Of a stretch of 64,000 nt of DNA, positions 2,790 through 35,410 are shown in pieces. The position numbers and the translations under genes are program-made. A model generated the notes under the pieces. It did not search any database. It saw nothing but the letters and a program-made list of their open reading frames with translations, and had not been told where the DNA came from. Source of the DNA: Gracilinanus agilis (Eukaryota); contig NC_058133.1 of the NCBI RefSeq assembly GCF_016433145.1, positions 212,644,132-212,708,131 of the forward strand, in the 5' to 3' direction. Every line of letters starts with the position of its first letter. Positions within the stretch are counted from its first letter, which is position 1.

Positions 2790-2892
2790 ATGCAGGAACT
2801 CATTGCTGGGTTGGAAAAAATGACCTTTAATCTTGAGGATGATGTGGAGAACCAGAGAGGTGTTGGGTATCTGCCCTTCCCAGGAATGGACA
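2790..2892 (+). CDS. CPSF4L: CPSF4-like protein, coding exon 1 (103 nt): MQELIAGLEKMTFNLEDDVENQRGVGYLPFPGMD(K)
   Basis: ATG at 2790 (caagATGc); donor a|GTAAGT at 2893. Peptide matches the CPSF30/CPSF4 N-terminus (MQEIIA...LPFPGMDK, recalled), and 103 nt is the CPSF4 exon-1 coding size. Confidence 0.93.
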
Positions 2893-3125
2893 GTAAGTTG
2901 GGGGTGGGAGGAATGTAACAACTGGCCACTCTTCTATGGGAGGGGGCCCTTCCCTTCTTTCAATATGCTTTTTAACCTATAGCAAAGGTTCTTAAGCTTC
3001 GGTCCATGAATTTTAAAGCAAAATTATATAATAATAATAATAACATAATAATAATAAAATTAAATTACATCTAAATATACAATATAGAAATCATAGTTAG
3101 CATTTTTTAAAAATTCAATTGTATG

Positions 3126-3322
3126 GAGGCAGCTAGATCACTCAGTAGATTAAGAGCCAGGCCTAGAGATCTGAGGTCTTGGATTCAAATCTGCCCTCAA
3201 ACATATCTTAGCTGTATAACCCTGGGAAGGCCATTTAACCCCCATTGCCTAGCCCTTAGCACTCTTCTACCTTGCAACCAATACACAGTATTGATTCTAA
3301 GACAGAAAGAAAGTGAGGGTTT
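3126..3322 (+). mobile_element. SINE-1-like element inserted in a hAT relic
   Basis: Full SINE consensus; accounts for ORFs 3123..3494 and 3197..3430. Confidence 0.85.
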
Positions 3323-4121
3323 CCCAGAAAACAACCCCCCAAAATTCAGTTTTATTTTACTTTTGGTTCCAAATTTTCTCTCTCCCTTATTCCTCTCCCA
3401 CATACCCCTTGAGAAGGCAAGAAAAAACAAAGCCCATCATGAATCTATCTTTGTGATTCTTTGTTATCCTAGGTGTTTTATCTTATATATTTAAAAGCAT
3501 TATTCCATGAACAAGGTCCATACCTTTGCCAGACTGCCAAAGGAGTCTATGATACTTTAAAAGGTTAAGAATTTCTGGACCAGATTAGCCTTTCTCTTTC
3601 ATCCTTTCTTCTTATGTCCCAGTCCACACTAATCAGAAAGTGGGAAGGTTGAGTCTAAAGGCCATCTGGTCCAATCTAGGATTTTAAAAATAGCCCTTTT
3701 ACTCCGGCGCTTGGATCTGACCTCTTGTCTTCCCCAAGGCTCTGGAAAGATGGGGCCAGAAACTACACAGCCATTTTCCATATGGGATATTCTGAAAATC
3801 GTAAGAGCAAAGGTAATTACAATAAAGAACTAATCCTTGAAGCTAGGCCTCTTGACTCCCCAGCTCAGGGCTCCCACACTGTTAGGTGAGGGAGAGAAGA
3901 GAAAAAAGAGAAGTATAGGAAATTGGGGAGGGGGGAACATTTGGAAAAGAGCTGTAGTATTGTGGTGATTTGATGCCTGCCACAAATTAGCTCCATTTGT
4001 GGGATTCTCTAGGTCCTTATGCTCTGAGAGAGTCAGATTTTTCCTTTTTTTTCTTTTTTAAGCATGAGAGGTAAGGACAGGAACAAACTGCACAACTTGT
4101 TATTTTCTTCTTTTCTTCTAG

Positions 4122-4172
4122 AATCAGGGGTGGCTGTATGCACCTTCTTTCTTAAAGGCTTCTGTGAGAAAG
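4122..4172 (+). CDS. CPSF4L: CPSF4L coding exon 2 (51 nt): (K)SGVAVCTFFLKGFCEK(G), first half of CCCH finger 1
   Basis: Polypyrimidine tract + ttctAG at 4120-4121; donor g|GTGAGT at 4173; phase 1/1 keeps the frame. Confidence 0.95.
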
Positions 4173-5196
4173 GTGAGTTCAAAAGAAATAGATTTGGTCT
4201 CAGATTGGCCTCCTAGCTGTGTGACCCTGGGCAAGTCACTTAACCCCCATTGCCTAGCCCTTACTGCTCTTCTGCCTTGGAACCAATAGCCAGTATTGAT
4301 TCTAAGATGAAAGATTAGGGTTAAAAAAAAAAAAGTCTCCCCTTCAAGGGGCATCTACTGAAGCCTGGATGTGACCTAGATGGTCAAGGGTCGGCTTACT
4401 GGGAGGGAGAGGGTGCATGGAATTTTCCCAGTAGCACCCAGTGCTATAGGTGACCAGGTATCACTTAGGTTGTAACTGCTCTGAGGAGCCAAAGCCTAAC
4501 TCTGAAGGAGGTATACCGGTCAGTAGCTTACATGGAGAGGGAGACAGATAAAGTAAGCAAATGTTGGAGGGGGATAAGTTGGTTGTGTTGGAAACAATTG
4601 GTTTTGGTAGGGAGGATGGCACAATGGATAGAGCAATAGACCTGGAGTCAGGAAGGCTTGGGGTTCTAAATATATTGTTTCTGCCTCAGTCTCTCCATTT
4701 ATAAAATGGGGATATTAATAGTACCTATCTCTCAATGAGGATATTTGTAAAGCTCTTTGCAAACCTTAAAGCATTATGCAAATGAAAGCCATTGTCATAT
4801 CTCTCCCCTGTCCCCTGATCATATTCTCTGAGATCAGGCCACAGCAACTCCCTAGAGAGCCTTAATTCTCACTTTGGATACTGCTGCCCTACAGGACGAC
4901 TTGGCCATAGTGTCTGAAATTCAGCTGTTAGCCCCACAGTGTAGGTGCAACAACAAGCTGATAATATTTTATCAGATCTGTTTAACATGGAGGGACTGAT
5001 CTCCAAAGAACATTATTGGGTATGTGAAAGAAAGGCAGAGGAGAAAATATGAGAAATATTCAAGACAAACCAAGTTACAGTACCTCCCGAGGCCATCCCT
5101 AGATGGTGAATTGAGAAGATAATAAAGGAAACCTTAAAGAACATTTAGCTAATAGTTGAGAAAGAAGCAGAGTTCTGTATAAAAAGTAAGCTCCAT

Positions 5197-5434
5197 NNNN
5201 NNNNNNNNNNNNNNNNNNNNNNNNNNNNNNNNNNNNNNNNNNNNNNNNNNNNNNNNNNNNNNNNNNNNNNNNNNNNNNNNNNNNNNNNNNNNNNNNNNNN
5301 NNNNNNNNNNNNNNNNNNNNNNNNNNNNNNNNNNNNNNNNNNNNNNNNNNNNNNNNNNNNNNNNNNNNNNNNNNNNNNNNNNNNNNNNNNNNNNNNNNNN
5401 NNNNNNNNNNNNNNNNNNNNNNNNNNNNNNNNNN
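5197..5434. other. Assembly gap (238 N) in CPSF4L intron 2
   Basis: Run of n. The exons on either side splice in frame with CPSF4-identical sizes, so no coding exon needs to be hidden here. Confidence 0.99.
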
Positions 5435-6099
5435 TGTCTGGCATTTATTAGGTATTAGATAAATACATATTGATTGAATAAGCAGTTAAAAGGAGAAGAC
5501 TGACCTAAACATGACTATGTGATAATGAAATTATTTCTTTTGTGTCCATCCAATGCTTATTGAGTCTATTCTATACAGAGCTTGGTGAATGAGGTATCAT
5601 TCCAGTAGTAAAGAAATTTGCCATCTACTGTGGGAGATAATGGGACATTATCATGTAAAGAAGAGCCTAAATACTTGAGAAAAATATGAACAAGGAGCTA
5701 TAAGAATTAGAGGAAGAAAGGATTACATCCAGCTAGCTGGACAATGAAAGGTTCATAGAGCAAGCAACATTTTAGATGATCTTAAAGGATAGGTAAGATT
5801 TCAATAGGCTGAGATTGGGATTGGGGGGGGGGAGGGTTGGTGTGGAGAGAGGAGAGGAGAGGGAGCAGGGAACATGAGCAGATTCACAGAGCTAGGAGAG
5901 CCCAAAATGGATTAGGAGAAGAATGAGACAAGGCTGGAAAGAGATGCTCCAGATAATGAGGATCCTTGATTATGATGATGATGACTGTAACTAGCATTTA
6001 TATAACTAGCATTTATAACTTTAAGGTTTGCAAAGTGCTTTACATATGTTACCTCATTTGATTCTTACAATAACCCCAAAGAGGTAGATTCTATTATTA

Positions 6100-6745
6100 T
6101 TTGATCTCTTTGGGATACAGACCTAGTAGTGGTATTACTGGTTCTAAGGACATGCACAGTTTTATGGTCCTTTGGACATGGTTTCAAATTGCTCTCCAGA
6201 ATGGTTGTATTAGTGTCCCAGTTTCCCCCAGCCCTTCCAAAATTTATCATTTTCCTTTTTCATCATATTAATACTTAAGGGTTATTTTAATTTGCATATC
6301 TCTAATTGTGATAGGAAACATTTTTATACGACTATTGATAGTTTTAATTTCTTCATCTGAAAACTGCTTGTTCATATCTTTTGACCATTTATCAATTGGG
6401 GAATGACTTACAGTCTTATAAATTTGACTCAGTTCTCTATATATTTGAGAAATAAGGCCTTTGCCAGAGTCACATGCTATAAAATTTTTTCCCAGTTTGT
6501 TGTTTCCTTTCTAATCTTGGTTGCATGTGTTTTATTTACACAAAAATATTTTAATTTAATGTAATCAAAATTACCCATTTTCATCTCATAATGTTCTCTT
6601 TGTCTTATGTGGTCATAAATTCTTCCCTTATCCATAAGTCTGACTGGTAGATTATTCTGTTCTCCCCTAATTTCTAATTTGTTCCTGGTGTCAACATTTA
6701 TTTCTAAATCATGTATCCATTTTGACTTTATGTTGGTAGATGAGA
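6100..6745 (-). mobile_element. L1 ORF2 fragment (degenerate)
   Basis: Minus-strand ORF 6477..6809 contains L1 ORF2-like IKSKWIHDL...DYIKLKYFC..K...KIRKETTNWEKI. Confidence 0.85.
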
Positions 6746-8038
6746 GCTTTTTATTATGGCAATTAATCTGGCAACAGCTTATTGAATATACTAGAGTTGG
6801 AAATAGCAATTAGGCTATTGCAATAGTTCAGACAAGGGGTCATGAGGACCAGAATAAAGCTAGTAGCAGCAAAAAAAAAAAAAAAAAAAATAGAAAAGGA
6901 GCAGGTACAAAAGACTGGGATAGACCTGAGCCTGAGTGACTCAGAATGATGATGGGGTTCACTGAGAAGCCAGCAAACAGAAGCAGGTTTTGCAAAAAGT
7001 TAATGAGTTCAGTTTTCATAATGATGTCCCTCTGGTACCTCAGACTCAGCCAGATAGAAATGTCTTGCAGCAATTGGAAATCTGAGTCAGTAACCATAGA
7101 AAGCAGAGAGGGCTTTGGGGTGGGTGAGATTGCCTAATCTATTCCTACCTCCCCTTCGAGGGCCCTTTCATCTCACCCCACATCCCTTTCTTGTTCTTAG
7201 AACAGCCATTTCCAAAATGATTTTACAATAGTCTAGGGGTCTATAGAGGGCTATAAGTACACTGTGGCATTTAGCAATATCGCCCCATTTGGGGAACATC
7301 TGGGCTGCAGCTGGAAGTCACCTTGCCAGTCCCACACCACTTACATTTTAATGTGTTCCATAACTACTTGGGGGGGCCTTATTAATAGAAAATTCTTGTA
7401 TACAGTACTGGTATTAGCACTCTCAAGATTATTTGTACTTTAATAACTAGTGCAGATAGAAGACCCACATGAATGAAACTGTACTGGTGCAAAAAGGCTG
7501 GTGCAAAAGAAATAGTTAGGGAGCCTTCCCAGCACCCCTCAAATGACATCAGTTAGGTGGGTCCCCTATTCCTGAGAATACATCTACTGGAAAACTTAAG
7601 AATTTCAGTATTCCTCTTGTTGTAAGCAATACAAAAAAGAGTTTCAATTTAAATGATTGGCCATGAACTGTAATATTACCAGGTAAAATCTAATCTGAAG
7701 TTTTATAAATTAGGCCTACTCTAATAATGTTGGGTTTAAATATGCAGTGGACAGGATTACTTCCCCTCTCCTTCTCCACCCCACCCCTAGCTTCTCATGT
7801 TCTCTTTTCCTTTTTTTCAGGCATCTTCTTCCCTCTAATCCTCCCCCCATGAAATCTAAACCTCTCAATGAGAGGAAATCCAAGTATAGTTGTAGGAGGG
7901 AGATTGGTAAGAAGGGGCAATTGATGTTAGAACATCCCTACTCTTCTCACAAAATTGTGATATCATTTGGGGGAGTAGGAGAAAGTGAGCCTACCCTAGA
8001 GATAAGCATGCTTTTGGGGGTTCATCTGCATTTTCTAG

Positions 8039-8191
8039 GCCACCTCTGTCCCTTTCGGCATGATGACGGGGAGAAGACAGTAGTGTGCAAACACTGGCTT
8101 CGGGGGCTTTGTAAGAAGAGCGACCAATGCAAATTTCTGCACCAATATGACATCACCAAGATGCCTGAGTGCTACTTCTACTCCAAATTTG
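8039..8191 (+). CDS. CPSF4L: CPSF4L coding exon 3 (153 nt): (G)HLCPFRHDDGEKTVVCKHWLRGLCKKSDQCKFLHQYDITKMPECYFYSKF(G), ZF1 end, ZF2, ZF3 start
   Basis: ttttctAG acceptor at 8037-8038; g|GTAATT donor at 8192; lies inside ORF 7747..8277; hallmark CPSF30 ZF2 sequence. Confidence 0.97.
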
Positions 8192-8530
8192 GTAATTTAC
8201 CTTTTGGGGATCCAAGATTTACCTGGCTAGTGCTCTATTCTTTAGTACTCTTTAGTACTCTACTAAGGAGGGTCTGAATAATAAACTTAAGAGAGTCTCA
8301 ATGAAATTTGATCCTGAGAAAAGAAAGGAAAAGAAGGAGAATTGGGGGAAGGGTTGACACACTTTTCAAGGAGGAAAAGTGCATCCCAGGATGCCCAGAC
8401 CTGCTAGGTAGAATTTCCTAAGGACTCGGGTCATGGCTACTTCCTCTCCCCACCTCTCACAGAAATGTAAACCACAGTTTATCCCACAGAACATGTGGGG
8501 CATGTCTTGTCTCCTTAGGAAAAGTTGGAG

Positions 8531-8532
<2 letters not shown>

Positions 8533-8585
<53 letters not shown>
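8533..8585 (+). repeat. (GT)26 microsatellite
   Basis: Perfect dinucleotide run, counted directly. Confidence 0.98.
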
Positions 8586-8588
<3 letters not shown>

Positions 8589-8804
8589 AAAACCAAAATA
8601 TGGCTTAGGAATCTTCCCTGTAGTTCTTTACAATGCCATCTGGTCATATTAGCATAGTGAAATAGAAAGCTTGAAGAATCTAGTCAGAAGCATTGGATTC
8701 GAATCCCAGCTCTGCCATTTGCTATTTTAGTGACCTTGAGAAACCACTTCTCTCGTGGTCTCAGTTTCCTCATCTGTAAAAAAAGTGACTAAAGTCTGCT
8801 GTAT

Positions 8805-9140
8805 TTTTTTTTATTTTAAATTTACTTTAAAAAAATTTTTTCCATGGTTCCATGATTCATGTGGCTTCCCTTCCCTCTTCCCTCCCCCCTCCCAGAGTTG
8901 ACAAACAATTCTACTGGGTTATACATGTATTATCACTCCAAACTATTTCCTTATTATTTATTTTTGTAATAGAGTAATCTTTTAAAACCAAAATCCCAAA
9001 TCATATACCCATATATACAAGTGATAAATCATATGTTTTCCTTCTGTGTCTCTACTCCCACAGTTCTTTCTCTAGATGTGGATAGCATTCTTTTCATAAG
9101 TCCCTCAGAATTGTCCTGGATCATTGCTATTAGTTCTGCT
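8805..9140 (-). mobile_element. L1 3' UTR/tail fragment
   Basis: T-rich tail then ccctcccctcttcctccccc...gtggatagcattcttttcataagtcc...gaattgtcctggatcattg. Confidence 0.7.
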
Positions 9141-12100
9141 ATATTTTTTAAAGCATGATTTCTGTCCACTTTGCTAACAATTTAAATATTTTTAAAAAGT
9201 AATTATTACTGATACTTATAATTGATTCTATGGCAGAAGAGTTTAAAACAGGGCGAGGACAGCTAGGTGGCTCAATGTCACCACTGATCCATGAAGTACT
9301 TTCTGGGTTCATCTGATTTGACTTTTTCCCTATATGCCTTCTGAGGATTTTTGTTAAATAAAGGCATGTCAACCCCCTCCAAGCCCTTACAGGTTCAGGA
9401 GTACCAATCCTCGTCTAGAAGAAGTGGAGCAGGGTTTCCTCAAATGCAAATTAGGGATAATAATAGTACTTACCTTGCAGGATTTCTGTGAAGATCAAAT
9501 GAGATAACATTTATAAGGCTCTTAGCATAGTGCCTGGCACACAGTAGGCATTTAATAAATGCGTGTTTCCTTCCCTCTATCCTGGGTGTGGACCTGACTT
9601 ATAAAAGGAGAATTGGACTTTCCCCAAAGCATATTGGCTCATTGTCCCTAGGAGAAAATCTCTCTTTTTTCAAAACTCTTATCTTCTGTCTTAGAATCAA
9701 TAATGTGTATTGGTTCCATGGCAGAAGAGCGCCAAGGGCCAGGCAATGGAGGTTAAGTGACTTGCCCAGGGTCACATAGCAGGGAAGTGTCTGCGGCCAG
9801 ATTAAGAAAATCTCTTAAATAAAGCCTGAGGATGGCTCATGACTAGGGTCTCCCCAAAAAGGGACTAGTGGGGCCCTTTCTGGAAAAGCTACTTGATATA
9901 CAAAGCCACTATTAAGTATAGGGTAGCTGGTTATTTTCCACCAAAAAAAGAAATGCTTCAAATACCAAAGATTCATAAGTACATGGTAATAAATACTTAA
10001 AACATGACACAAGAGCCTATCACTGATTATATTCTCCTAGGAGATAAAGACCATTTTGTGGGTCTTCTGTCTTGGAATGGATACAGTATGTTAGTTCCAA
10101 GGCAGAAGAGTGGTAAGGGCTAGACAGTTGGAGTTAAGTGACTTGCCCAGGGTCACATAGCTGGTAAATGTCTGTGGCCAGATTTGAACCCATCTGTAGG
10201 CCTGGCTTTCTAGACACTGACCATCTAGCTGCCCCCCTCAGAGGTTTTTTAACTTCGAAGATAGCCTCCAAGGCTGGACATGTCCATCTTCCAGGATCGA
10301 TGGTTGCTGGTCAAATGCCTGTGTTCAGGGAAGGAACAAAAGGCAAAGAGGCTGACAGAGTCTTGAGGTCCTTTCTCAGGCTTGCCTAGAGATCATTATA
10401 GATCACCATTTTCATGTGTTGGAGTTGTGAGCTTTTGTGGCAACTGGAGGAACGTCGGGGAGTGCATTTCTCCTCAGCTGGAAATCTGAGAGAAGGCACT
10501 GGATCCATCCAAAGTGTCAAGTGCTCAGAAGAGACTGGAAGCAGTTTCTCTTCGTTCTTCTATAGCCTCCTGAGGGGGGAGAGGTCTCTTCACAAGCATT
10601 TCTCCCCTAACTCCGATGGCAAAATTTCTCATGCAACCCCTAGTCATGGGGATCAGTCTAGAGTTGCTGTATCATCTCAGCAAAGCAAAGAGTATATCAT
10701 TCAGCAGGAAGCCAACAGACATGTTTATCCCAACGGAGCCAGAGTGGATGCCCAGCTCCATGGGAGATTCCCCAGTCCAGCGGATTCTTGTTACAGGAAA
10801 GATTGTCATGAGAAATCAGACTTAAGGATCGTCCAACCCAGTTATCCTCTTGCCAACAGCATTTATAGAAGCATAGATTTAGAGCTGGAAAGAGATCCGA
10901 GAAGCCATCTAAACCAAACTTCTCATTTTATAGATGAGGAAACTAAGGTCTACCTAAGAAGAGTCAGTGACTTGTCCAAAATCACATAGTAAGCATCAGA
11001 AATAGGATTTGAACAAGGATGTCTGGTGGCAGGGCTTGGGGCCCCAATCTTAAAAATGAATCATATCTTTGACTTTCTTTGAAGACTTTTGAAGCTTTAT
11101 CATTCATAAAGGTCTGTTCTTTTGTTTTTATAACTTATTAATATATGATCCTTGGTGTCTTATCCAAAGCATCCTACTTCTCCCATTCATTAAGATGACC
11201 AGAGAGGCAGCTTTATATAAGGAATACAGAGCTTTCCTTGAAACCAGGAAGATCTGAGTTCAACTCCCTCTTGTGATACCAACTGTCTGTGTGACCCTAG
11301 GCAAGTTAATTTCTCAGTGCTCTAAGCAACTTCCTAACACTGCATCCCATAACCAGATGTATAGAAGGAATACGCCCAGGAATTACACCAAAGAAATCAC
11401 AGATCCAGTTCCATTTATATGAAATTTTCTTAGCTTTCTATTTTGGGGGAGGAAGAAGAGTCCATGAGAATGGGTGGTGTGGGGTAGAGAGAGTAGGGGC
11501 TGTCTCTGGCCTTTCTGAATCTGTCTACCCACAAAAGATGTTTGTCATTAGCAGCCACTTTTTCACCAGGATGTAATGTCTGGGGGAAATGGTATGTTAG
11601 CACCACCTTCTGATGATAGGTGAGAACTGCATAACCAAGCATCCTCAGAGGTAGAAGAGGGAAAACAAGGAAGAAATCCTTGATACCCAGACTTTGTTCT
11701 CTAAAATACTGAGCCAGGCCTCAGAAGATAACTTTTTGCCTTCACTAATTGATTGTTTCCCCAGAGTAGCACCACACAACACAGGGTTCTGTTCAACAGA
11801 TGCCTCACTGGAATGATGTCTTACATTATGGTTCTGGCTCTGCCACTAATTGCCTCACCTTAGAAGTCCCTTAATTTCCCTAGGTCTCTTTTTCCCTCTG
11901 TAAAATGAGGAGATTGAACTCAGTAGTGCTGTAGAGGTGTGAGAGAAAGGCAATGACTGGTAGGACTTTAATTTGAAGGGTAATGGCTAGCGGAACATAT
12001 TTTCCCCCCAAATAAATCCAGTTCCCATGAGAGGCGAGAACTGGACTTTTGAATCACTGGACATGGAGCACTTGGGTCTACAATTTTCCTATGGGAGGGG

Positions 12101-12677
12101 AAAGCTAGGTAGTACAGGGGGTAGAGTGTAGGGCTTGAGTCAAGAAGACCCGAGTTCAAATATGGCCACAGACATTTCTTTGATATATGACTTTGACCTC
12201 CTTCAGGCTCAGTTTCCTCATCAATGAGGATAATAACAGTACCTACCTCACAGGATTGCTGTGATCAAATTACATGACACCTAAAGTGTTTTGCAAACCT
12301 TAAATTAATTAATTGAACTGTAAACGTCAATATGTGATATTCACTTATTATGCCATATCATCAGAGGGACTTCATTATCCTTTACGTAGGCAAGGAGCCA
12401 AGAGACTAGCCATAAGAACTTGGGTCTAATATTGCAGTAGGCCAGCAGAACAGATTAGTAGGGTTCTTCGTTTTTCTGGGAAGGGGTTAGGGCTAGGCAT
12501 ACTTCTATAACAGATGTGGAAATACCTTGGTATTGCTTAATGGGCAAAAGGAAAAAAGAAGTCATGGTGGGCTTTCATATGTAAGGACCCAGATTAATCT
12601 AAATGGGGATGGGGATGAAATGAGAGGAAAATATCTAAGAGCTGGGCATAATGTAGCAATGACTGGTACTATTTCAG

Positions 12678-12773
12678 GAGAATGCAGCAATAAAGAATGC
12701 CTTTTTCTTCATGCTAATCCAGCCTCCAAGATCCGAGACTGTCCCTGGTATGACCAAGGTTTCTGTAAGTATG
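12678..12773 (+). CDS. CPSF4L: CPSF4L coding exon 4 (96 nt): (G)ECSNKECLFLHANPASKIRDCPWYDQGFCKY(G)
   Basis: tttcAG acceptor at 12676-12677; g|GTAAGG donor at 12774; lies inside ORF 12527..12850. Confidence 0.97.
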
Positions 12774-13262
12774 GTAAGGCTTCGGCTGACAGAGGAGCTC
12801 AGCTTTTCTTCTCTACTAGGTGGGGAGGGAGAAGAGTGATTAATTGCTGAAATTCCTCTTGTCCATGACATCAACTCTCAGATAAGAACGGAAATATTTC
12901 CAACCTCTTTTATCCCTACCAATAGAAAGGAATATACATAATTTTCAGTTGTGCATAACACCTTCATGAAAACTGACCATGTATGAAGATATATAAGCCT
13001 CACAAACAAATGCAAAAATATCTTTTATGATTCAATTCTGTGAAAAACTAAATTCAACAAAGAGCTACTAAACAAAAGATTAAAAACAAATCAAAAGGGT
13101 GGAGCTTGGGGGGTGAAGGGGAAAGTAAGAGCATGAATTATGTAACCATGTTGACTTTTCTAAAAATAAATATTAATAAATGTTTTTTTTTAAATGCTCC
13201 CAATAAAGCAAGAAAAAGTATAATGGTGAGAAAAAAAAACAACAAATCAAAAGCTAACTATA

Positions 13263-13756
13263 AGGGGGCAGCTGGGTAGCTCAGTGGATTGAGAGCCAGG
13301 CCTAGAGATGGGAGGTTCTAGGCTTAAATCTGGCCTCAGACACGTCCCAGCTGTGTGATCCTGGGCAAGTCACTTGACTCCCATTGCCTACCCTTATCAC
13401 TCTTCTGCCTTGGAGCCAATAAGGCAAAGACAAGAAGCCAAGACAGAAGGTAAGGATTTAAAATTTTTTAAAAAATTGTTTTTAATTTTAAAAATCTAAC
13501 TATATTGGGAGCAGCTGGGTAGTTCAGTGGATTGAGGGCCAGGCCTAGAGATGAGAGGTCCTAGGTTCAAATATAGCCTCAGACACTTCCTAGATGTGTA
13601 ACCCTGAGCAAGTCACTTAACCCCCCATTATCTAGCCCTTACTGCTCTTCTGCCTTGGAACCAACACATAGTATTGATTCCAAGATGGAAGGTAAAGGTT
13701 TAAAAAACAAACCAACCAACAAACCAACAAACAAACAAATAAATAAATAAATAAAT
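13263..13756 (+). mobile_element. Two head-to-tail SINE-1-like elements (about 13263-13490 and 13507-13756)
   Basis: Two full consensus copies; (g/t)ctaactata motif before, between and after; AAAC/AAAT tail. Confidence 0.9.
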
Positions 13757-14660
13757 AAGCTAACTATATTAATCCTAAAGAACTGGCAAGTCAAAGGACA
13801 AAACAATAGGTAATGTTATTAAAGACAATGTCATGAGTGACAACACACCAAGATGTAGGGCTTGCGGCCAAAGCACTCCTAAGGCAGAAAATTTATATTT
13901 CTTATATCTCTATCTCCAATTCTCTCAGGTCCCTAACTTTTATAATGGCAAATACCACTACTTTATCAAAAATCTTTCTTCCAACCATGGATGGATGATT
14001 TTGTTTTTGTCTTTTAAAACCTTTACCTTCTTAGTATTAGTTCTAATTCAGAAGAGTGATAAGGGCTAGACAATCAGGGTTAAGGGAGTTGCTCAAGGTC
14101 AGACAGCTAGGAAGTATCTGAGGCCACATTTGAACCCAATCCCTCCTGATTCAAAGCCTGATGCTCTATGCACTAAGCCACTTCACTCCTCTTTATTTAA
14201 TCTTAAGCATTAGGTTATTTCTCTTGGGCATCATTAGCTTCTAAGCACAGCTTATCCACCTCTGCTAGCTTCAGAAAACCTCTCATTTCTCAGTTAGCAT
14301 TGCTAGCTGTGTGGGTGGTGTTAGGAACTTCTAGACTGATAGACAGAGGGGGATGTCATGAAGCAGGTGGGACAATGTTCCAGGTTCAAATGGCCCCAAA
14401 GGCAATAAGCCTGCCTTTTATTTCTCACCATCAAAGTTCAAGCTCCATTTACTGTGACTATCGACAGTCCCTCCTGGTGTCCTATTTGAATAACATGAAT
14501 GAAGACACCAGCACCCAGGTGATCATTATTGAGAGGGCAGGAAATTACTTGGGCTCAGTGGTCATCCATCCATTGCAAATTCCTATCCACCTTAAAGTCC
14601 ATTCTTCCTGTCTGTATTAGGGCTGAGTTGCCTAAGGTGTTAATGTTCTTGGCCCAGCAG

Positions 14661-14754
14661 GTCTTCTGTGTAAATTCCGCCATACCAGAAGAGTGCTGTG
14701 TACCAACTACCTAGTTGGCTTCTGTCCAGAGGGACCTGGTTGCAAATTCACACA
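14661..14754 (+). CDS. CPSF4L: CPSF4L coding exon 5 (94 nt): (G)[30 protein letters not shown](H), ZF4 end and ZF5
   Basis: CAGCAG tandem acceptor at 14655-14660; ca|GTATGT donor at 14755; matches CPSF30 ZF5 ([19 protein letters not shown], recalled). Confidence 0.95.
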
Positions 14755-15222
14755 GTATGTATTTCCCTTAAATCATCAGTTCACACCAGAAGGCTGCTTT
14801 AGCCCATCACTGATTCCTGCTTTCTAATCCCCAAAGGACAGAGGCATTCTATACCTTTGATAGCTCATATTATACTCAATTGTGTCCACTAGCTAAGCCC
14901 CCCCCCAAAATTTCTCATTCTTCCAAAGTAGCCCTTTCTACTGACAGACTATAGTAGGGGTTTTCTTGTTACTCCTGATATCTTGATTAAATAAAATTCT
15001 TCATTATGGACCCTGAAAACAGCAGCAGAGAAATCTAGTTGCCAAGCCCCCAGCTATGCTGACAGCATAAGTTCTTTTTTCCTTGTCCTGGGTGGGAATC
15101 CTTTCCTTTCAGAGTCTGGAAATGTGAAGTTTACAGTAGCCTTTGGTGTTGAGAACATTATTAAGCTGGAGTTGGGTGTGACATATTGGTACTTTAATTG
15201 CTTCTTCATATCTTCTTCTCAG

Positions 15223-15265
15223 CCCCAAGATGACTCTGTTATTGCATAACACAAGTCACTCAAAG
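15223..15265 (+). CDS. CPSF4L: CPSF4L coding exon 6 (43 nt): (H)PKMTLLLHNTSHSK
   Basis: Long pyrimidine tract + tctcAG at 15221-15222; aag|GTAAGA donor at 15266. It completes the ZF5 His codon (phase 2 in, phase 0 out), as CPSF4 exon 6 does. Confidence 0.8.
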
Positions 15266-15472
15266 GTAAGAACTAGAAAGGGGTATGTGTCAGCCATGCT
15301 CACCTCATTTAAATTTCCTACCATCACTATGTTCTCCAGGAGTTCCTAACCCTAGATAAATGGTACCTATTTCCCTATGAAAAAGGTGACATTCCTAAAG
15401 ACTATTGTACTTTTTTTAGCATGTGTTGTGTCCAATTTGCTAGCCATTTTAATATTTTTTAATGTCATTATT

Positions 15473-15670
15473 TGGAGCACCTAGGTGGCTCTGTAGCTTA
15501 AGAACTAGGCCTGGAGATGAAAAGTCCTGGGTTCAAATCTAGCCTTAGATGCTTCCTAGCTGTGTGACCCTGGGCAAGTCATTTCACCCCCATTGCCAGC
15601 TCTTACTGCTCTTCTGCCTTAGAACCAATACACTGCATTGATTCTAAGATAGAAAGTAAGAGGTTTTTTT
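15473..15670 (+). mobile_element. SINE-1-like element
   Basis: Full consensus match. Confidence 0.85.
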
Positions 15671-17316: not shown

Positions 17317-17322
17317 AATAAA
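17317..17322 (+). promoter_or_regulatory. Candidate CPSF4L poly(A) signal AATAAA
   Basis: First AATAAA I found after the stop codon (about 480 nt downstream), followed by U/GU-containing sequence. Confidence 0.55.
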
Positions 17323-18770
17323 TTCTTATGATGTGAGATACCAAATTGCATAGGGTTTTCTGAGCTTACAGAATGGAGGGAAAGAAGAATCTTTTGTTTT
17401 CTTGACCTTCCATTTTATTCACTTTTTAAGTCCCAGATAGTAACTTTTATGCTTCTCTTTTCTACCTGGCATCACTGCCCACCCTATGGTCCTTGAAAAT
17501 CCTTTTTGAGTGAATATGAATGTGAGATTTTGGGATGCTGACACCATGTACTCTCAAAGTTTATTGTTGTTGTTTTGGTTTTTTCCTAGCTGATTACAGC
17601 ATCACATTTTGGCAGGAAATACAAATTGTATAAGAATCCAAATATGCTCTCATGGGTTCTGCTGGGGTTTCATTATGCAGTGGGGGTGGGAGGACTCTTA
17701 ACATGTTTGAAGAAGAAATTAAGCCCATCAAATCTTTCCTTTCAGCTTGGAGGAAGGGGCCATTTTGCTAGTGAACACAAGAAGAATCAACCAACAGTGT
17801 TCTTCAGAAAATAACAGAATATCTGAGTGACTAGACGACCTTTGTGAGCAAATAATCCCCAATAATCTTAGCATATATGATATTCAATGTAACATTTGTT
17901 TATTGTTTAAATTAATGTAATTTAATGAGGTAAAATCACTAAAGTCTGAATAGCATGAAAAGTAAATGCTTCATCTTTTTCTCTTTTCCAATAAGTGAAT
18001 GAACCTCAAACAGTAAAACAGAATGAAGGCAAAATGCCTGAATCTGATTGTTGTTGACTTATATATTGAATTATATATTCATTCATATATATTAATATGT
18101 ATATAATATATATTCAACATGTTGAAAGGAAGAAATCATAAAAACTAAGAAAATCCAAATGATTTCATATTTTATGTGGTTCTTTTTTTTGTGAGCCAAA
18201 TCTGTCATATGGGACTAGAAATGCTTCTAAGTGCTGGCAAAGTCTCATAATCTACTCTAGCTAATACAAAAGCTACCTTCAGCATGATGAAGGCACTTGG
18301 CATTCATTCTAAGTATAATGGTACATACTTCAAGCTCCAATTGTGTTTCATCTTAAAGATGATGTGCACATGGAAGATTAATTTGTATCATTCATGACTT
18401 TACGTTAGGGATGGGGCTGCATCTGTGATTTCATTGGCACAGGGAACTTCTGGATGAGGAAACTCCCTTCCACCAATGTAGGTTGGCATTTTCTCTGAAA
18501 CTTACTGCCCGAGAACAAAGGTGAGCTGGAGATTCATCTGGTCTATTAATTTGCAACTTTTAATATTTTGATAACTGTATTTCAACAGAATTTTGTTTCT
18601 TTTGTAATTCAATGCACTTATTTTTTTTGCATTTTAAAACATTCTGAGAAGCGATGCACTTCATTAGATTCTCAGAGATCCATGACACAAAAATGATTAA
18701 GAATTTTTGCCTTAGAAAGTTGCCTAGTGTGGGTGTGGTGAAAAATGCTTGTAATCCCTAATGCTGGGAG

Positions 18771-18890
18771 GGAGGGAGGAAGGAAGACAGGAAGGAAACA
18801 AGGGAGGGAGGGGGGAAGGAGGGAAAAAAGGAGGGAAAGAAGGAAGGCGGGAAGGAAAGAAGGTTGGTAGGCAGGTGGAGGGGGTGGGAA
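18771..18890 (+). repeat. Purine-rich (GGA/GGAA) low-complexity tract
   Basis: Nearly pure A/G run between the CPSF4L and C17orf80 3' ends. Confidence 0.85.
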
Positions 18891-20492
18891 GATGTTATGT
18901 GATTTTCCCAGGCTAGCACAATATCCATCAGAGGTATGATTTGAACCTAGGTCTGGCTCAGATGCCAGCTCTCTATCTACTATACTATGGTATCAAACTC
19001 AAATAGAAATGGAGCTTTATTGGATGTGTATTGTCTTAAAACTGCAAATTAACATTATACATTTTTTATTTATTTTGTTAAACATTTTCCAACTATACTT
19101 TAATCTGGTCAGGGCCATTACAATTAAAGGTTCTGTACTAGACCATTATGCCTTTTTACTTTTATGATATAGGAGTTATAGGGAGTAAAAATGTTATAAG
19201 AAGTAGTATATGCTGGCTTCTGTAGGAAAGGCTTTATGGAAAAGGTAGAACTTGAGTAAATCCCTGAAGGACAATGGAATTGGGGTCAACAAAATAGTGG
19301 AAAGGGGTACAGTATATTTGAGGGACAATGAGGATTCTGACTGGTTAAGAAGAAAAATCATGAGGTGTGGCTAGATGACACAGTGGATAGAGTCAGGCCT
19401 AGAGTTGGGAGGACCTGGAATCAAATCTGACCTCAGATACTTCCTAGCTTTGTGACTGGCAATTCACTTAATTCTGCATTGCAAGTCCTTGCCATTCTTC
19501 TGTCATAGAATTGATACTAAGACATTTTTATAGTTTGTAGTTGAAACTAATGGGTTGTTTTTTTTAATCACATTGGGAAGTAGCAAGAGATAATAGTGCT
19601 ACTCTGTTATCTAGAGATGGCCCTGACTAGCAGAGTGAAATAATTTAGATATCACTCTGTTGGGGTATATAAGATTTATGAGGAGTAGAGTGATATGATG
19701 AAGGTAGAACTTTTTGAAGACTGTGTACAGGATGGATTTGAAAGGAAAGAGAATCGCAACAATGAGACCAATTAGGCTGTAGCAATTATCCAGGCATAAG
19801 ATAAAGATCTGGACTTGTACAGTGTTAGTGAGGATGGAAAGGATTTTTCCTTTAAAATAACTCAGATCATCCTTTGAACTTGAAATATCAGAGTAGGTAT
19901 ATAACTTAATATAAGGGAGAATTAAAAATAATAGCTTTGAAATCCTGGTGGTTGTATCAATGGAAAGGAATTGATATGGACTTGCGGAAAGGTAAAGAAA
20001 ATGTTATTTTGGACATGTTGAGTATGAGCTGATGACTCCAGGTAGAGCTTTCTGTTGGCAACTAGCATATAGTGGTGATTAGTTAAGATGTGAATGAATG
20101 GATTATAAGGGCAGAAGAGTATGCAGTTTCGTTTAGACTGAAAGCAACTTCGTTTTTATCAACTAAATGTATCACATCTGTCCTGATGAAAATCTGGCTA
20201 CTTACTGACAAACTTTCCATGACATCATTAGATATGGGTTTCTTTTCTGTAAAAGCAAAATACTAACAAATCCACGGGGATATTCCTTCCTTTAAGATGT
20301 TAGCTTTGTTAAACAGAGGCAGCTACCTGGCAAAAACTGTTATGAATATACCCTCTAATAAATCCTATGATGTGTGAACTAGAGTGTAAATAGTTTTTTT
20401 TAGTACTGAAGTAGACTTCTAATGTCACATTCATGGCTAAGCACTTAAGTTTAGCAGTCAGTCTATCTTATATGCTTAAAAATAACATTTTA

Positions 20493-20704
20493 GGGGGCAG
20501 CTGGGTGGCTCAGTGACTTGAGAGCCAGGCCTAGAAATGGGAGATCTTGGGTTCAAACCCGGCCTCGGATACTTCCTAACTTGTGTGACCCTGGACAAAT
20601 CACTTAAAACCCATTGCCTAGCACTTACCACTCTTCTGCCTTGGAACCAATACATGATATTGATTCTAAGATGGAAGGTAAGGGTTTAAAAAAATAATAA
20701 ATAA
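20493..20704 (+). mobile_element. SINE-1-like element with 15-nt TSD aaaaataacatttta
   Basis: Consensus match with the direct repeat on both sides. Confidence 0.9.
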
Positions 20705-21336
20705 TAAAAATAACATTTTATATCTTAACCCTTAGCATTTAATGCATTAAAGTTCCCTAAGACAGTTAAGCTGTATGTTCTGGTAGAACATGTGGTTTTT
20801 GCTTGTTTGTTTGTTTGTTTTGAGAGGCACCTAGCTAAAACAATATTTTCTTTAGCCTGACAAAACCAGAAATTCCCAACACTGATCACTCCTTTGGGCC
20901 AAGAGATTGTCTTGAAAAGACCCTTATTTAAAATACAAACGTTAGATCTAGGACAAGGTAAAACTTTAGCATTATTGTTGACTTATAAAAGGCAACAGAA
21001 AGGTGCTAGAGGAAGGTGGGTAAAGGAGTGTTGCAAATGAATTATGTAGGTGGGAAACTGGGAGCTCCAAAGTGTTTTCTTTAAGGATTATTTCAGAAAT
21101 TTCTGGTCTAGAGAGAATGAAGATGAAGTTTTCCTAATATGGAAATCTCTTAAGGAATTATGGATGAGGCTGGTATTGGTGGTCTAGGTCTGAACTAAAT
21201 TCTAAGATAAAACATCAATTTTCTTGGCCATGCCTTAGTAAGAATTAGAATTACCACAATTTATCTCTTCTTTTTAAAACTAGGACTCCAACACACATGT
21301 TAACTGTAATACAGTACCAAAGTAATATAATGAATA

Positions 21337-21342
21337 TTTATT
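21337..21342 (-). promoter_or_regulatory. C17orf80 poly(A) signal AATAAA
   Basis: Plus-strand tttatt about 300 nt past the stop; GU-rich gtgtgttgg lies downstream on the minus strand. Confidence 0.7.
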
Positions 21343-21644
21343 GCTTTTCTACTCCACACCCTCCATTCAGGTTAGCCAAGGAAGTCAGTCTGTGTGCTCA
21401 GGCACAACTTTAGTTTAACTATTTTCTTTTCAGAAATCTCTAATTAACAAAATCCTGACAATGAGAATAATGTCTCAGCACTAATTTTTTAAATTATATT
21501 TTTAAAATATGGTTCAGGAACTTTGCTATTCCCTCTCTCCTCTTCTGAAGTAAAATATTAAGCTTTTACATGAATTACAGTGATTCTCACTGTGTTTCTC
21601 CCAATCTATCAGAACTCCTCTTGACACGATGCATGGTTTCCTGA

Positions 21645-21673
21645 TCAGTACTGCTTGCGCCAATGCTGCAGCT
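21645..21673 (-). CDS. C17orf80: C17orf80 terminal coding exon (29 nt): (K)LQHWRKQY*
   Basis: Long pyrimidine tract then cccaaAG (plus 21674-21675); phase 1; TGA ends at 21645. Total CDS is 1707 nt = 568 aa. Confidence 0.85.
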
Positions 21674-22442
21674 CTTTGGGTAGAGAAGGGAAAAACAAGG
21701 AAGGTTTGAGAAGCAACAATTATTGACCATCAAAGGAAGTAAAGTCCTTTGGTACAAGTTGAGATTCAAAATCCCAGATTAAGCTTTTCTTTCAGCCTAG
21801 ACCCCAAACAGCTCATGAAATCAAAAGCTCAAATGATATTTTGTCCCTCACATCATACTTCCCTTTGTAAACTACCTCTGACAGGGGAGAAAAAGAGTGG
21901 TAGAGTGGGGAATGTATTGACAAAGTTAGGAAGCTTGATTAGTAGGAAATGCCAGGCTTACAAATGATCACTATCTGTCTTCTGACTTGAAGGTCCAGAG
22001 CCATACTCAGGCATGGTCATCTAGAGTTTTTACTTTTAGCCTCTAATCTGGACTCAGTCTAGATCTAGAAAGAGTTCATTTAGCTATGTCCAAATGTGAA
22101 GCCTGAAGTGACTACTTCTTTGCTTTAGGGGCAAATCACTGCTGCCTAAAGAACTGAAGGTTTATGCATCAAAGGACCTAAAAAAAGTGAATGGGCAGGT
22201 GCAGTTGTGATCAAAATATTTAGCAGGTGGGAGAAGCCATATGAGTATTATTAGATCAGAGTACTGAAGATGCTAGAAAGCTACTGAGGGGCAAAGGCAC
22301 CTTGTATATATAAACTTTGTAGAAAAGGAAAGGTCAAAAGTGCAGGGCATTCCTTGGTAAGCAGAGGAGTTGTTCCCTAATATTTAACTGTGTCTGTGAT
22401 TCAAGGGTTTATAATTCAAGCCCAAAAGCCAGGAAGTCTTAC

Positions 22443-22556
22443 TCAGGTGCTTGAAACTCCAGCTGTAGCAAAGGACACAGTATCCAGCAAAGAGCATTGT
22501 GATGCCACCGACGCTACCCTTCTTCAAGTTGTTATATTTTTGGTATTTAATCCAGG
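22443..22556 (-). CDS. C17orf80: C17orf80 coding exon 3 (114 nt): (A)WIKYQKYNNLKKGSVGGITMLFAGYCVLCYSWSFKHL, transmembrane segment
   Basis: ttctttttaaaCAG acceptor (plus 22557-22559); a|GTAAGA donor at 22442; phase 1/1; hydrophobic GITMLFAGYCVLCYSW stretch. Confidence 0.92.
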
Positions 22557-23038
22557 CTGTTTAAAAAGAAGCATGAGTCTACTTGTTAGTGAACTCTAAT
22601 TCTGGAATTTATTTTCCAAAGTCTTTTCTCTCAGGCCATTGGCCTGGGAAATGAACATATACTTCCAGAAAGTACTCCCAGAATGTTAGACTAAGTAAAG
22701 GACCTTAAATAACAATAATCTAGTCCCTTCAAATGCTGAGAAAGGCTCCAAAGTAGTTTTAGTCTTCCTTAGGAGCTAAGGTCAAGCATTTCATGGGGAA
22801 ACATCTTTATATAATATGAGGCTTGAGATGATCTATAGGTATCAGTCAATCAATATAGGTATCTACAGGTTACAAGTTTTCATGCTAATTCACATCCAAG
22901 AATAGATAGAAACAGGGTCAGGTTGTTGTACACAAAATGACAAATCCAGTGGCATAAATACCACAGATATAGAATGACTTATAAAGTTTATAAAATCATC
23001 TAAACCCAGTAACTGAATCATCATCAATCCAGTCTCAC

Positions 23039-23167
23039 CTTTTTGAACTGTTCCCAGCAGCCCCATTAAAGAGAAGTTGGACATTGCAAGCCAGGATGGA
23101 AGGTTTCCAATCTTTATATCCAATAGACTTTTTTCCAAAAGTGGAACTATGGATGCAAACAGAACTT
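23039..23167 (-). CDS. C17orf80: C17orf80 coding exon 2 (129 nt): (E)VLFASIVPLLEKSLLDIKIGNLPSWLAMSNFSLMGLLGTVQK
   Basis: cattttaCAG acceptor (plus 23168-23170); g|GTGAGA donor at 23038; phase 1/1. Confidence 0.9.
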
Positions 23168-26716: not shown

Positions 26717-29011
26717 AATATGTATGGCATTAAGTGCAGTTTCCAACTCAAATATTTGAATATTAATAGGACTCTAATTAGAAAAGATAAAGAATATGGT
26801 TTTAGTCCCCTACCTTGGAATTCATTTTTGTTTGTTTTGTTTTAAACCATATTATTCCATCTTAGAGTCAATATTGTAAATTGGTTCCAAGGTAGAAAAG
26901 TGATAAGGGCTGTGGGGGTTAGGCAATGGGGGTTAAATGACTTGCCTAGGGTCACACAGCTAGGAAATGTCTAAGGCCAGATTTAAACCCAGGACCTCCC
27001 GTCTCTAGGCCTGGCTCTCAATCAACTGAACCACCTAGATAACCTCTACCATGTAGTCTTTAATAAAGATCCAATCTGGTTTAGAGGAATAATTTGTCTG
27101 TTCATGACCTGTTTAATCTTATAATTTTGACCTCTTGACCTGCTCTAGTAAATGAAGGGGATTAGGGAAAGGCATACAGCTCTAGTCATTGTATTCATAA
27201 GCCTGAAGAATTATCTTCCTACTTCGATGTTTAAAGAGATCATCTCTATTCCAATCCAGTTACCAAGACTGAGCAGAAAGACCTTTACCTAAAAAAGGAA
27301 ATTTGACAATAACAATAACAATGACAATAACAATAACAACAATAATAATAATAGCTAACATTTATAAAGTGCTTACTATGTGCCAGGCACTGATAAGTAC
27401 TTGACAATTATCTCATTTTATCCTCATGACAATCCTGACTGGTAACTACCATTAACTCTACAAAGGGTGTTAGAACTCACAAAAAGGAGTCCCTTTCCCT
27501 GTTATAGGTAAACTATCACATATATTTACTATATAGTGAGGAAAAGTGGAAAGGAATTGGTAGTAGAGAGATTTGAGTTCTAGTCCTGCCTCCAGTATCA
27601 TGAACTATATGACCTGGAATAAATAATTACACTTTTCTGTACTTACTTATCTATGAAACAGGAGGAACACAACTGGTCCTGCTTGCATTATAGGGATAAT
27701 TTCATGATCAAATTGAAATAATTTATGTAGAAAAACTGCAAAGAGCTAATCAAATGTAAGAGAGCAGTATTATCAATAACATGGTGTTTTAAAAAGAGTT
27801 TAGGATCAAAACTTCAAAAGATGTATTATGTCAGAATCTTTGATATCTGTAGGTCCCAAGGGAAGACCTCCTCAGGAAGGTGAAAAAAATGACATTGGCT
27901 ATTAGTCTTCCTTTAATAATAAAACACCAAAATATAGACATTTGCTCTGTGGACTAAAATGTGGTAAATGTAAAAAAATGTGGTGCTTTGGAGGAGAGTA
28001 CAATCAAGTAAATAGCTCTTTAGGGGGAAAAAAAATCTTTGGTATTTCTAGAAAGCAAGAAATAGCTCAGATCTAAAATAGTACTTAAGGAGTATAAAGT
28101 ATTTTCCTTCCTTACAACAACTTTAAAAGGACAGCATTATAAATATTATCCCTATTAAGAAACTGAAGTTCTTAGAAGTTATTACCCAAGGTCACATGTG
28201 AAATACGTATTGGAGCTAGGATTCAAACCCAGCTTTCTTGGTCTCTAAGTACAATCCTTCTTCCTCCTCTTGAACCAAGTTATAAGAATTAACTTGGTTC
28301 AAACCTAATTATGAATTCCCTAAAATTTCTGCCAAAATGAAACAGAGGTATCTAAGAACATCGATGAAGAATCTTAGACCATAGACAGTACTTTGAAGCT
28401 TCTGATCAGGACCTGATAGAATAGTTCTTTTAAGGAAAACCAGGAAACTCTTTTGATTACAACTGCATAGTTTGGTCCAATTTCTAAAGGCATAGCTGTA
28501 TGAAAAGTTAAGGTCCAAGTTTAACAAGTAAGGAGTTGTTATCAGTTGACTAATTCATGAATCCCATATCTAGCTCTTCCAATTGGTTGTACTTATTTGG
28601 GAACTGACCCTAAAAGAAGGAGCAAATAAGAAGTCTCTGCCTCAGAAAAGGTCAGGCTTGATAGAAGTCCTATATTTTTTTTTTATCCAGGTGCTCTCTA
28701 ATTAGGGGGCCCAGATCCCTACTCCAAATAAGTTTGTGCCACATTCCACATTCATACTGTATACCCAGTATTTACTTTTCCTTCTCCTCCTCGTCCCTTA
28801 TTGATATTACCTGTCGTGGCTCTGGAAAATGGGCATAAGACTACTATTGTTTAAGGGGCAATAATAATTCTGTCAGCCACCTAAACTATCAGTGTGGAAA
28901 GGAGTGAAATCAGTAAAAATATAAATAAGAATTCAAAACTTTATTTGCTATCTACATCAATATAGAAACTTTTCAGAAGGGTTAAATATTTTAAATAATC
29001 TACTTATTTAC

Positions 29012-30446
29012 CATTTAAGAATCCTTCCATTTCTGGGAAGTTGTGGTGAGGTTTCTGGATATTAGTATTCCTCTGCTTAGGTTTCCTTGGTAATACTTTC
29101 AAATGTAGATACCCAGGATAAAGTTCTGGAAACCACTCTAGGCCCAGGGACCTATGTGGGCTCTTGTTGCCAGAGGCTTTGCCATGACCACTGGTTAAGT
29201 TTTTAGGAGCATCATGCCAGTCTGGGTTTATAGGTTGTTGATCAGAATCAGACTCTGAAGAAATTGATCTTTTACTTTCCGGTGGATTGTCTTGAATGAA
29301 CTGAGCCTGGTACTCATCTTCCTCTTCTTGTAGATATCTTAAAACCAAAGCAGAGAGACTTTGGTTACCAAATTCTGCCAAAGAAAGAAACTTTTCATTA
29401 GTTGGCCCCCTTGAAGACAACAAAGCTATATCATCATCATCATCATGGTAAGGTATCTTCTCCATAGCTAAGTCACTGTTATTCACATGCTTCCTAGGGC
29501 CATCTCTCACATAATCCAATTTCAGTACTTCTGCCTTAGGTGATTTATTAAAGTCTTCGAATCCTCTATTCAAACTCCCCTTTCTAGTTGCATCTAGCCC
29601 ACAGTGAAACTCCTTTTTCTTTGCTCCACGTTTGATGTGATAGTTCTCCATTCCCCCAATTTGGAGTGCCTTATACAAGTTATCTGTGAGGGGTGGTCCT
29701 ATGTTTCTTCTCTGGGTCTCAGAATTATTGACACTGGATGAGGTTTCTGAGATGGGGTCACTAGTTTTGGGGCCTCTCTCATTGTTTTGTAAAGTTGTAG
29801 AAGGATTTTGACTTCTTTCAAGACTAGGAAAACTTTGATTACTGAAAGACAAATCTAATGTTTCTGTCAGCATTTTCTGTCCTGGCTGCTCAATTTTGAT
29901 ATAATTGTGGAAGCTTGAAGAATATCTTTTATCTTCTTTAATAGAAGAACATTCAGAAGAGCTGCTTTCCCAATTTTCTGAAGGACTTTTGCTCTTGTCT
30001 TCCTTTGATTTGGGTAAATATTTTGTAAATTTTTTTGTTGCAGAAAGCTGAAGCCCATTCTTATCCGGAAAAAAAACCTTCCCTGGTCTAGGAGGAGTCT
30101 GTGTTATCTGGGGTGTATGTTTAATTTCCTTCTTCATGTCTTTACTTGTCTGCACATTGGTTCCCATTTTGAAGGCAGCAATATGTGGTTTATCTTTTAT
30201 GAGGTTTGTGTTTCTTCTCTTCCTTTGACTTTCTTTACATGCCTCTTCACCATCAGCATTAGCTTTGGCTGATTTTTTCCATAGCTCCTTTATTTTGGGG
30301 GCTTGGAGGACTGCTGCCTTGGAAGTAATGTTTGAATCAGAAAGAATAGGCCTTATCTTCTTACAGTAAGGCAAATGAGACTTTAATCGTTTAAATTGTT
30401 TCATACAGTAGGGACATAGCTCCATTTTGGTTAAGATGTCAGCCAT
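29012..30446 (-). CDS. C17orf80: C17orf80 (MTNAP1, mitochondrial nucleoid-associated protein) giant first coding exon, 1435 coding nt: MADILTKMELCPYCMKQFKRLKSHLPYCKK...GLEWFPELYPGYLHLKVLP...EMEGFLN
   Basis: ORF 29004..30548(-). Acceptor ctaatCAG|gaagATG puts the exon start at 30450 and the ATG at 30446. Donor aatg|GTAAAT at 29011. N-terminal CPYC..FKRLKSHLPYCK and the GLEWFPELYPGY motif match human C17orf80 (recalled). Confidence 0.93.
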
Positions 30447-31091
30447 CTTCCTGATTAGAAATATAAATGTGAATTTTATTATTATACAGAAAACAAACTT
30501 CCTTTTCATCCATTCAATTAAGTGTCTATTCATTCTCATCTTAAACATTAAGGAAATTAATTGGGATTTAATGACGATTCATTTTGCATTTTCGTGGAGG
30601 TAGAAAATAAATCGGTGGTTTAGTTTTTGTTTTAAAAATAAACTCAACCCTCTGCCTCTAACCTCAATGAGGAATTTTATATTTTTTCCTAAGGTCTTGT
30701 GGGAATCAACATCTACAGAAATTGATTAAGAGAATTTCCTTTTCACCCACAGTCTACCTTCAGTAAAATACTTAAGTGCCTTAGAGAGAAAAAAAGGATA
30801 AAAATCTTAAACTAATGAATGAGTAGATACATGAAAAAGGAAGAGAAAAATATATTTAAAACACAAACTAAACATGGGATTTATCATTAAGCAGTGAAGT
30901 ACACCAGCAGATATCAAGTAAACATTAAGACTTTAAGAATTATTAAATTTTCTTATTTAAAACATTAAATGCTATTATAACCAACTAAAAACTTTCTTAG
31001 TAATATTCATCTTTACATTAATACACATGAAGATTTTTAATAGCCCATCATTTCATCATTCAAGATGGAAAGAGAAGTATATGCCCTAAGA

Positions 31092-34760: not shown

Positions 34761-35410
<650 letters not shown>

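Follow-up and report, generated by a model that had tools for sequence, protein, structure and literature searches.

In a stretch of 64,000 nucleotides from the opossum Gracilinanus agilis (contig NC_058133.1, positions 212,644,132 to 212,708,131; the whole stretch is called the window), the genes CPSF4L (plus strand) and C17orf80 (minus strand; orthologues in other species are now named MTNAP1) lie tail-to-tail, about 4.8 kb apart. This pair is very probably a copy of the block formed by CPSF4 and ATP5MF, the gene of ATP synthase subunit f, and both halves would have been copied in one duplication. The paired adjacency with its orientation, the retained introns and the compatible ages of the two families would be explained together by such a single event. 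The evidence consists of exact gene models, homology, introns at shared positions, adjacencies observed in three lineages for each pair and compatible trees.

The two genes were identified by their proteins. The minus-strand open reading frame of 514 codons at 29004-30548 was 100% identical to the G. agilis 'uncharacterized protein C17orf80 homolog' (P0001, 561 residues), and the CCCH exon at 8039-8191 was 100% identical to G. agilis CPSF4L (P0266, 207 residues). Models with GT-AG introns were rebuilt from the window, and the spliced translations of CPSF4L and C17orf80 equalled both database proteins exactly. The features of the locus are as follows.

2790-16837, plus strand: CPSF4L coding region, 7 coding exons, 207 residues, five CCCH zinc fingers.
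2790-2892, 4122-4172, 8039-8191, 12678-12773, 14661-14754, 15223-15265 and 16754-16837 (with stop), plus strand: CPSF4L exons.
30446-29012, 23146-23039, 22556-22443 and 21673-21645, minus strand: C17orf80/MTNAP1 exons (4 coding).
29012-30446, minus strand: first coding exon of C17orf80/MTNAP1, residues 1-478, N-terminal CCHC zinc finger and long poorly conserved region.
21645-23146, minus strand: last three coding exons of C17orf80/MTNAP1, subunit-f-like domain including the transmembrane helix.
16838-21644: convergent intergenic or 3'-untranslated interval, stop codon to stop codon, 4,807 bp.
5197-5434: assembly gap of 238 N inside CPSF4L intron 2 (4173-8038).

A CPSF4 paralogue and C17orf80 running towards each other had been proposed from the letters of the window; the exact models bear this out, with the stop codons facing each other across the 4,807 bp, and the limits given in that original prediction (2790 and 30450) practically coincide with the start codons of both genes. 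The gap is the sole run of N in the window and hides no CPSF4L exon, because exons 2 and 3 join in frame and zinc finger 1 is intact across their junction, with the C-x7-C-x5-C-x3-H spacing of human CPSF4. The CCCH exon matched human CPSF4 with an E-value of 4e-36 and gave Pfam zf-CCCH matches; G. agilis C17orf80 carries PF10206 and the precomputed PF28519 (MTNAP1_ZnF).

Residues 479-561 of opossum C17orf80, exactly the product of its last three exons, were aligned with residues 10-92 (out of 93) of human ATP synthase subunit f (8h9f_R; E = 7.8e-23), and PF10206 is recorded for the opossum, elephant-shark and quail orthologues; the subunit-f-like character that had been proposed for these three exons is thereby upheld. 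The 83 C-terminal residues of opossum MTNAP1 align with ATP5MF end to end, including the transmembrane helix, whereas the first exon encodes 478 residues with a CCHC finger in MTNAP1 and 5 residues in ATP5MF. A profile of mammalian C17orf80 C-termini, searched against 1.8 billion representative proteins, yielded two kinds of protein, namely short ATP5MF and many proteins of 300-900 residues with an N-terminal C-x2-C-x9-H-x3-C finger and the f domain at the extreme C-terminus. Clusters of the long kind are named C17orf80/MTNAP1 in turtle, quail, gecko, gharial, frogs, axolotl, sturgeon, bonefish, cichlid and elephant shark; several C17orf80 orthologues are automatically named 'ATP synthase subunit f' in UniRef. 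Identity between the f domain of C17orf80 and ATP5MF of the same or a related species was 54-60% in non-mammals, 43% in the opossum and 28-34% in eutherians, and the last two values point to faster change of the domain in eutherians than in marsupials. Among the C17orf80 isoforms of mammals, many lack the first f exon or carry alternative tails after the transmembrane exon.

The homology itself had been reported before. C17orf80 was described as a gnathostome-specific nucleoid protein that combines a zinc finger with a subunit-f-like domain (Potter et al. 2023, J Cell Sci; PMC10445727); the f homology was found by HHpred (E = 2.6e-15), and the range extended down to elephant shark (A0A4W3JPR0). 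Homology and taxonomic range agree with the present results, whereas the text of that paper is without 'duplicat', 'paralog' and 'CPSF4', and the shared introns and the two-gene synteny described below are absent from it. The protein was located at mitochondrial nucleoids and an interaction with ATP synthase (complex V) was not supported (PMC10445727); knock-down of C17orf80/MTNAP1 left ATP synthase assembly unchanged (bioRxiv 10.1101/2025.11.15.688601). The published role of the f-derived transmembrane helix is that of an inner-membrane anchor for this nucleoid-associated matrix protein.

Both genes share introns with their proposed sources. The f region of opossum C17orf80 has three introns, all of phase 1: the large exon ends within a Val codon (G/TT), the next exon ends with K + G and the following one with HL + A. 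Exon 1 of Xenopus ATP5MF encodes M-A-D-K-P + G and is followed by the same Val-Pro-Leu start as in opossum C17orf80, and each of the three introns splits one and the same codon in opossum C17orf80 and in ATP5MF of Xenopus and seal: the V of VP[LV], the residue that follows [RQ]K, and the K that follows H[LI]. The large zinc-finger exon of C17orf80 ends in phase 1 precisely at the ATP5MF exon 1 boundary. Since the intron between exons 1 and 2 of ATP5MF is retained in C17orf80, the large exon sits in the place of exon 1, and the gene structures fit a replacement of the 5-residue first exon by the large zinc-finger exon. The proposal that C17orf80 is a copy of the whole ATP5MF gene agrees with all three introns in codon and phase, the exon 1/exon 2 intron included.

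For the other half of the block, five introns are common in position and phase to opossum CPSF4L, bowfin CPSF4L and bowfin CPSF4 (four of phase 1, and one of phase 2 within the His of finger 5). A retrocopy origin was considered for C17orf80 and for CPSF4L and is ruled out for both, because the introns are conserved. CPSF4L thus resembles CPSF4 (CPSF30) in having five CCCH zinc fingers and in the position and phase of five introns, but evolves much faster, as judged from branch lengths. The C-terminal CCHC zinc knuckle is present in both CPSF4 and CPSF4L of bowfin and missing from opossum CPSF4L, whose last residue is 207.

Gene order was compared across vertebrates in 10-kb flanks around each locus. 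In bowfin and in seal the order is PTCD1 (minus), CPSF4 (plus) and ATP5MF (minus), with 3.6 kb and 1.8 kb between the tails, respectively; Xenopus tropicalis has ATP5MF (plus) and CPSF4 (minus), again tail-to-tail, at a distance of 3.4 kb. The CPSF4-ATP5MF adjacency is therefore found outside mammals, in Xenopus tropicalis and bowfin, as it would have to be if it is old. At the second locus the order in the opossum window is CPSF4L (plus), C17orf80 (minus), FAM104A (plus) and COG1 (minus). Bowfin has CDC42EP4 (plus), CPSF4L (plus), exons of C17orf80 (minus; zinc finger, middle part and first f exon) and FAM104 (plus), and quail has COG1, FAM104 (minus), C17orf80 (plus), three decayed CPSF4-like exons (minus) and CDC42EP4 (minus). 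CPSF4L and C17orf80 are thus tail-to-tail in opossum, in quail (with a decayed CPSF4L) and in bowfin. Since both convergent pairs occur in bowfin and in tetrapods, the bony-vertebrate ancestor must have had them too.

Trees were built for both families. The unrooted tree of the f domain (36 sequences, 86 columns) separated all ATP5MF, from sharks to mammals, from all C17orf80 by a single branch (support 80/47), so that the C17orf80 domain is not nested inside a lineage-specific ATP5MF clade, an outcome that would have spoken against the proposed origin. Elephant-shark C17orf80 was placed nearest the split, as expected with the root on that branch. Since ATP5MF and C17orf80 both occur in elephant shark, the f duplication is older than the jawed-vertebrate crown. 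The tree of the CPSF4 family was computed from 38 sequences and 259 columns, with shrimp and nemertean as the root. The CPSF4L sequences, from bowfin, amphibians, turtles, birds and mammals, formed one clade (100/97) with bowfin basal, which mirrors the species tree; the clade was placed outside ray and bony-vertebrate CPSF4 and inside the invertebrate outgroups, and hagfish took no settled position.

The following course of events is proposed. An ancestral vertebrate segment with CPSF4 and ATP5MF tail-to-tail would have been duplicated at the DNA level, together with its introns, at a time before bony vertebrates had their last common ancestor; the CPSF4 half, too, may have been duplicated before the jawed-vertebrate ancestor, and the copying probably took place in one of the two whole-genome duplications of early vertebrates. 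The first daughter would have remained the CPSF4-ATP5MF pair. In the second, CPSF4 would have given rise to the fast-evolving CPSF4L, with loss of the zinc knuckle in mammals, and the ATP5MF copy would have kept exons 2-4 and exchanged its 5-codon exon 1 for a large exon (CCHC finger and disordered region) to become C17orf80/MTNAP1.

The human chromosomes concerned carry other gene pairs. Between 7q21-22 and 17q24-25 these include SMURF1/SMURF2, BAIAP2L1/BAIAP2 and LMTK2/AATK; the pairs SDK1/SDK2, ACTB/ACTG1 and RAC1/RAC3 (chromosome 7/17q25) are taken as background. Documented cases of chromosome 7/17q paralogy are COL1A2 at 7q22.1 with COL1A1 at 17q21 (PMC2235844) and NPTX2 at 7q22.1 with NPTX1 at 17q25.3 (PMC7461825). 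The time window and this paralogy fit the early vertebrate genome duplications, with membership of the paralogous set assumed from the literature. With the HOX-linked pairs of chromosomes 7 and 17q the present block would share the chromosome pairing and the time window; it differs from them in that C17orf80 is so changed in function and architecture that it was named as an uncharacterised open reading frame.

A number of observations count against a single block duplication or against parts of it. Within the flanks compared, elephant-shark C17orf80 has FAM104 head-to-head and no CPSF4-like exon within 10 kb downstream; elephant-shark ATP5MF is followed by a galectin gene, with no CPSF4 in its 10-kb flanks (its other neighbour, of 703 residues, is not PTCD1); sawfish ATP5MF has no CPSF4 within 10 kb, and the cichlid C17orf80 locus has no CPSF4L in its 10-kb flanks. 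No pair from before the duplication was seen either, in that CPSF4 of the nemertean Lineus longissimus has no subunit-f neighbour (39-kb gene plus 10 kb). Given the lack of adjacency in the sampled chondrichthyans, the adjacency is traced no further back than the bony-vertebrate ancestor, which is later than the f duplication. A block duplication requires that in chondrichthyans CPSF4 and ATP5MF came apart and that CPSF4L was lost or moved elsewhere. Neither tblastn nor motif scans located a transmembrane exon in bowfin C17orf80. On the side of the trees, the f-domain tree is based on only 86 columns and has no outgroup, and the grouping of ray with bony-vertebrate CPSF4 has only 80/46 support. 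An approximately unbiased test left an origin of CPSF4L after the ray split standing (p = 0.32); the date of the CPSF4 duplication is therefore compatible with that of the f duplication and is not independently fixed to it. Of the earlier expectation that the two duplication nodes coincide, the compatibility of the trees with one early-vertebrate duplication per family stands, whereas a later origin of CPSF4L is not rejected. Finally, the immediate neighbours of the two blocks (PTCD1 as opposed to CDC42EP4/FAM104/COG1) are not paralogous, which speaks against the whole-genome mechanism.

This last point would suit a small segmental duplication of the two-gene block in a stem jawed vertebrate, with the copy landing between CDC42EP4 and FAM104A, and so would the fact that only the two genes are common to both loci. 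Isolated pairs are, however, a routine outcome when many duplicates are lost after whole-genome duplication. Paralogy between chromosomes 7 and 17q is recognised and includes pairs that join 7q22.1 to 17q, and the timing window matches the early vertebrate duplications; a segmental origin is regarded as rather unlikely. Independent duplications of the two families, whose paralogues later came to lie tail-to-tail by chance rearrangement, would be in keeping with the adjacency missing at both loci in the chondrichthyans sampled and with the CPSF4 tree, which allows an origin of CPSF4L after the shark split, whereas C17orf80 predates that split. The chance of a paralogue pair landing adjacent and in the same convergent orientation would nevertheless be about 1 in 10,000 or less among about 20,000 genes, and bowfin and tetrapods alike already carry both pairs, so that this course is scarcely credible.

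C17orf80 might also be a zinc-finger gene to which exon shuffling or retro-insertion later added three exons of subunit f. All introns of the f region are of phase 1, which favours exon shuffling, and across eukaryotes the zinc finger and the f domain are each found without the other (PMC10445727). Against capture, the large exon ends at the ATP5MF exon 1/2 intron, unchanged in codon and phase, the retention of all internal introns excludes a retrocopy, and a CPSF4 paralogue lies on the side and in the orientation to be expected, something that the capture of three exons leaves unexplained; capture is thus judged very improbable. Duplication of CPSF4 and ATP5MF together as one block is preferred to all of these.

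In the literature library that was searched, no paper was found that links CPSF4L, C17orf80/MTNAP1 and ATP5MF/ATP5J2 with each other or with 'ohnolog', and duplication, paralogy and CPSF4 are unmentioned in the C17orf80/MTNAP1 papers examined (including PMC10445727). The f homology and the gnathostome age were already known, and automated family resources probably group C17orf80 with ATP5MF already; the explicit origin by shared introns and a two-gene block is new, a modest advance and an example of a well-known kind of event. MTNAP1/C17orf80 supports mitochondrial DNA replication and is linked to a neurodegenerative disorder (PMC10484793, PMC13035927). Earlier described only as a 'young' vertebrate domain combination, it would now have a concrete origin as a retained duplicate of the whole ATP5MF gene, in which a membrane subunit of ATP synthase was turned into the membrane anchor of a nucleoid protein. 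Such descent would account for the 54-60% identity to ATP5MF that the f-like domain has kept in non-mammals, and given this retained similarity it is a sensible question whether MTNAP1 docks at the site of subunit f. CPSF4L, which has barely been studied, would gain a clear age and origin, and a two-gene marker would be added to the paralogous regions of chromosomes 7 and 17q.

The convergent order of a polyadenylation-factor gene and a subunit-f-type gene could itself be under constraint, kept in both daughters from the bony-vertebrate ancestor onwards at the least, but this is considered distinctly unlikely; overlapping 3' ends, or an f-type gene reading antisense through its partner, would possibly be the cause. 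In human, read-through transcripts of ATP5MF-PTCD1 span CPSF4. A Monodelphis C17orf80 isoform (P0002) has an alternative C-terminus, residues 564-596 of which were mapped to 38-139 of the window (minus strand) with 91% identity. This exon has a good polypyrimidine/AG acceptor and lies 2.65 kb upstream of the CPSF4L start codon; as it is located beyond the 5' end of CPSF4L, the Monodelphis isoform would be spliced antisense across the whole of CPSF4L. The exon ends A-rich and may be repeat-derived or a prediction artefact.

In quail, degenerate CPSF4L-like exons lie between C17orf80 and CDC42EP4 (locus L002:14396-15098, minus strand; no gene called); the finger-2 exon is only about 41% identical and one Cys of finger 5 is changed to Tyr. 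Annotated CPSF4L proteins of 254-267 residues exist in ostrich, kiwi, rhea and stork, which suggests that CPSF4L decayed in galliforms. In bowfin an open reading frame of a Tc1/mariner-like transposase directly follows the first f-like exon of C17orf80 (locus L006:17500-18310, minus strand; no gene called). The bowfin copy of C17orf80 may be disrupted or damaged.

The remainder of the window upstream of C17orf80 contains the following features.

34501-35500: CpG island between C17orf80 (minus) and FAM104A/VCF1 (plus), GC content 0.56-0.63, CpG observed/expected 0.7.
38356-58975, plus strand: FAM104A/VCF1 exons, found by tblastx against quail FAM104; conserved upstream neighbour of C17orf80.
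59916-61472, minus strand: 3' exons of COG1, found by tblastx against the 3' end of quail COG1.

The CpG island is the sole one in the window and is probably a shared divergent (bidirectional) promoter of C17orf80 and FAM104A. The head-to-head order of FAM104 and C17orf80 is kept from elephant shark to opossum, and also in quail. In CPSF4L intron 3 a (CA)n/(TG)n microsatellite at 8470-8560 gives rise to spurious open reading frames of Cys-Val and His-Thr repeats.

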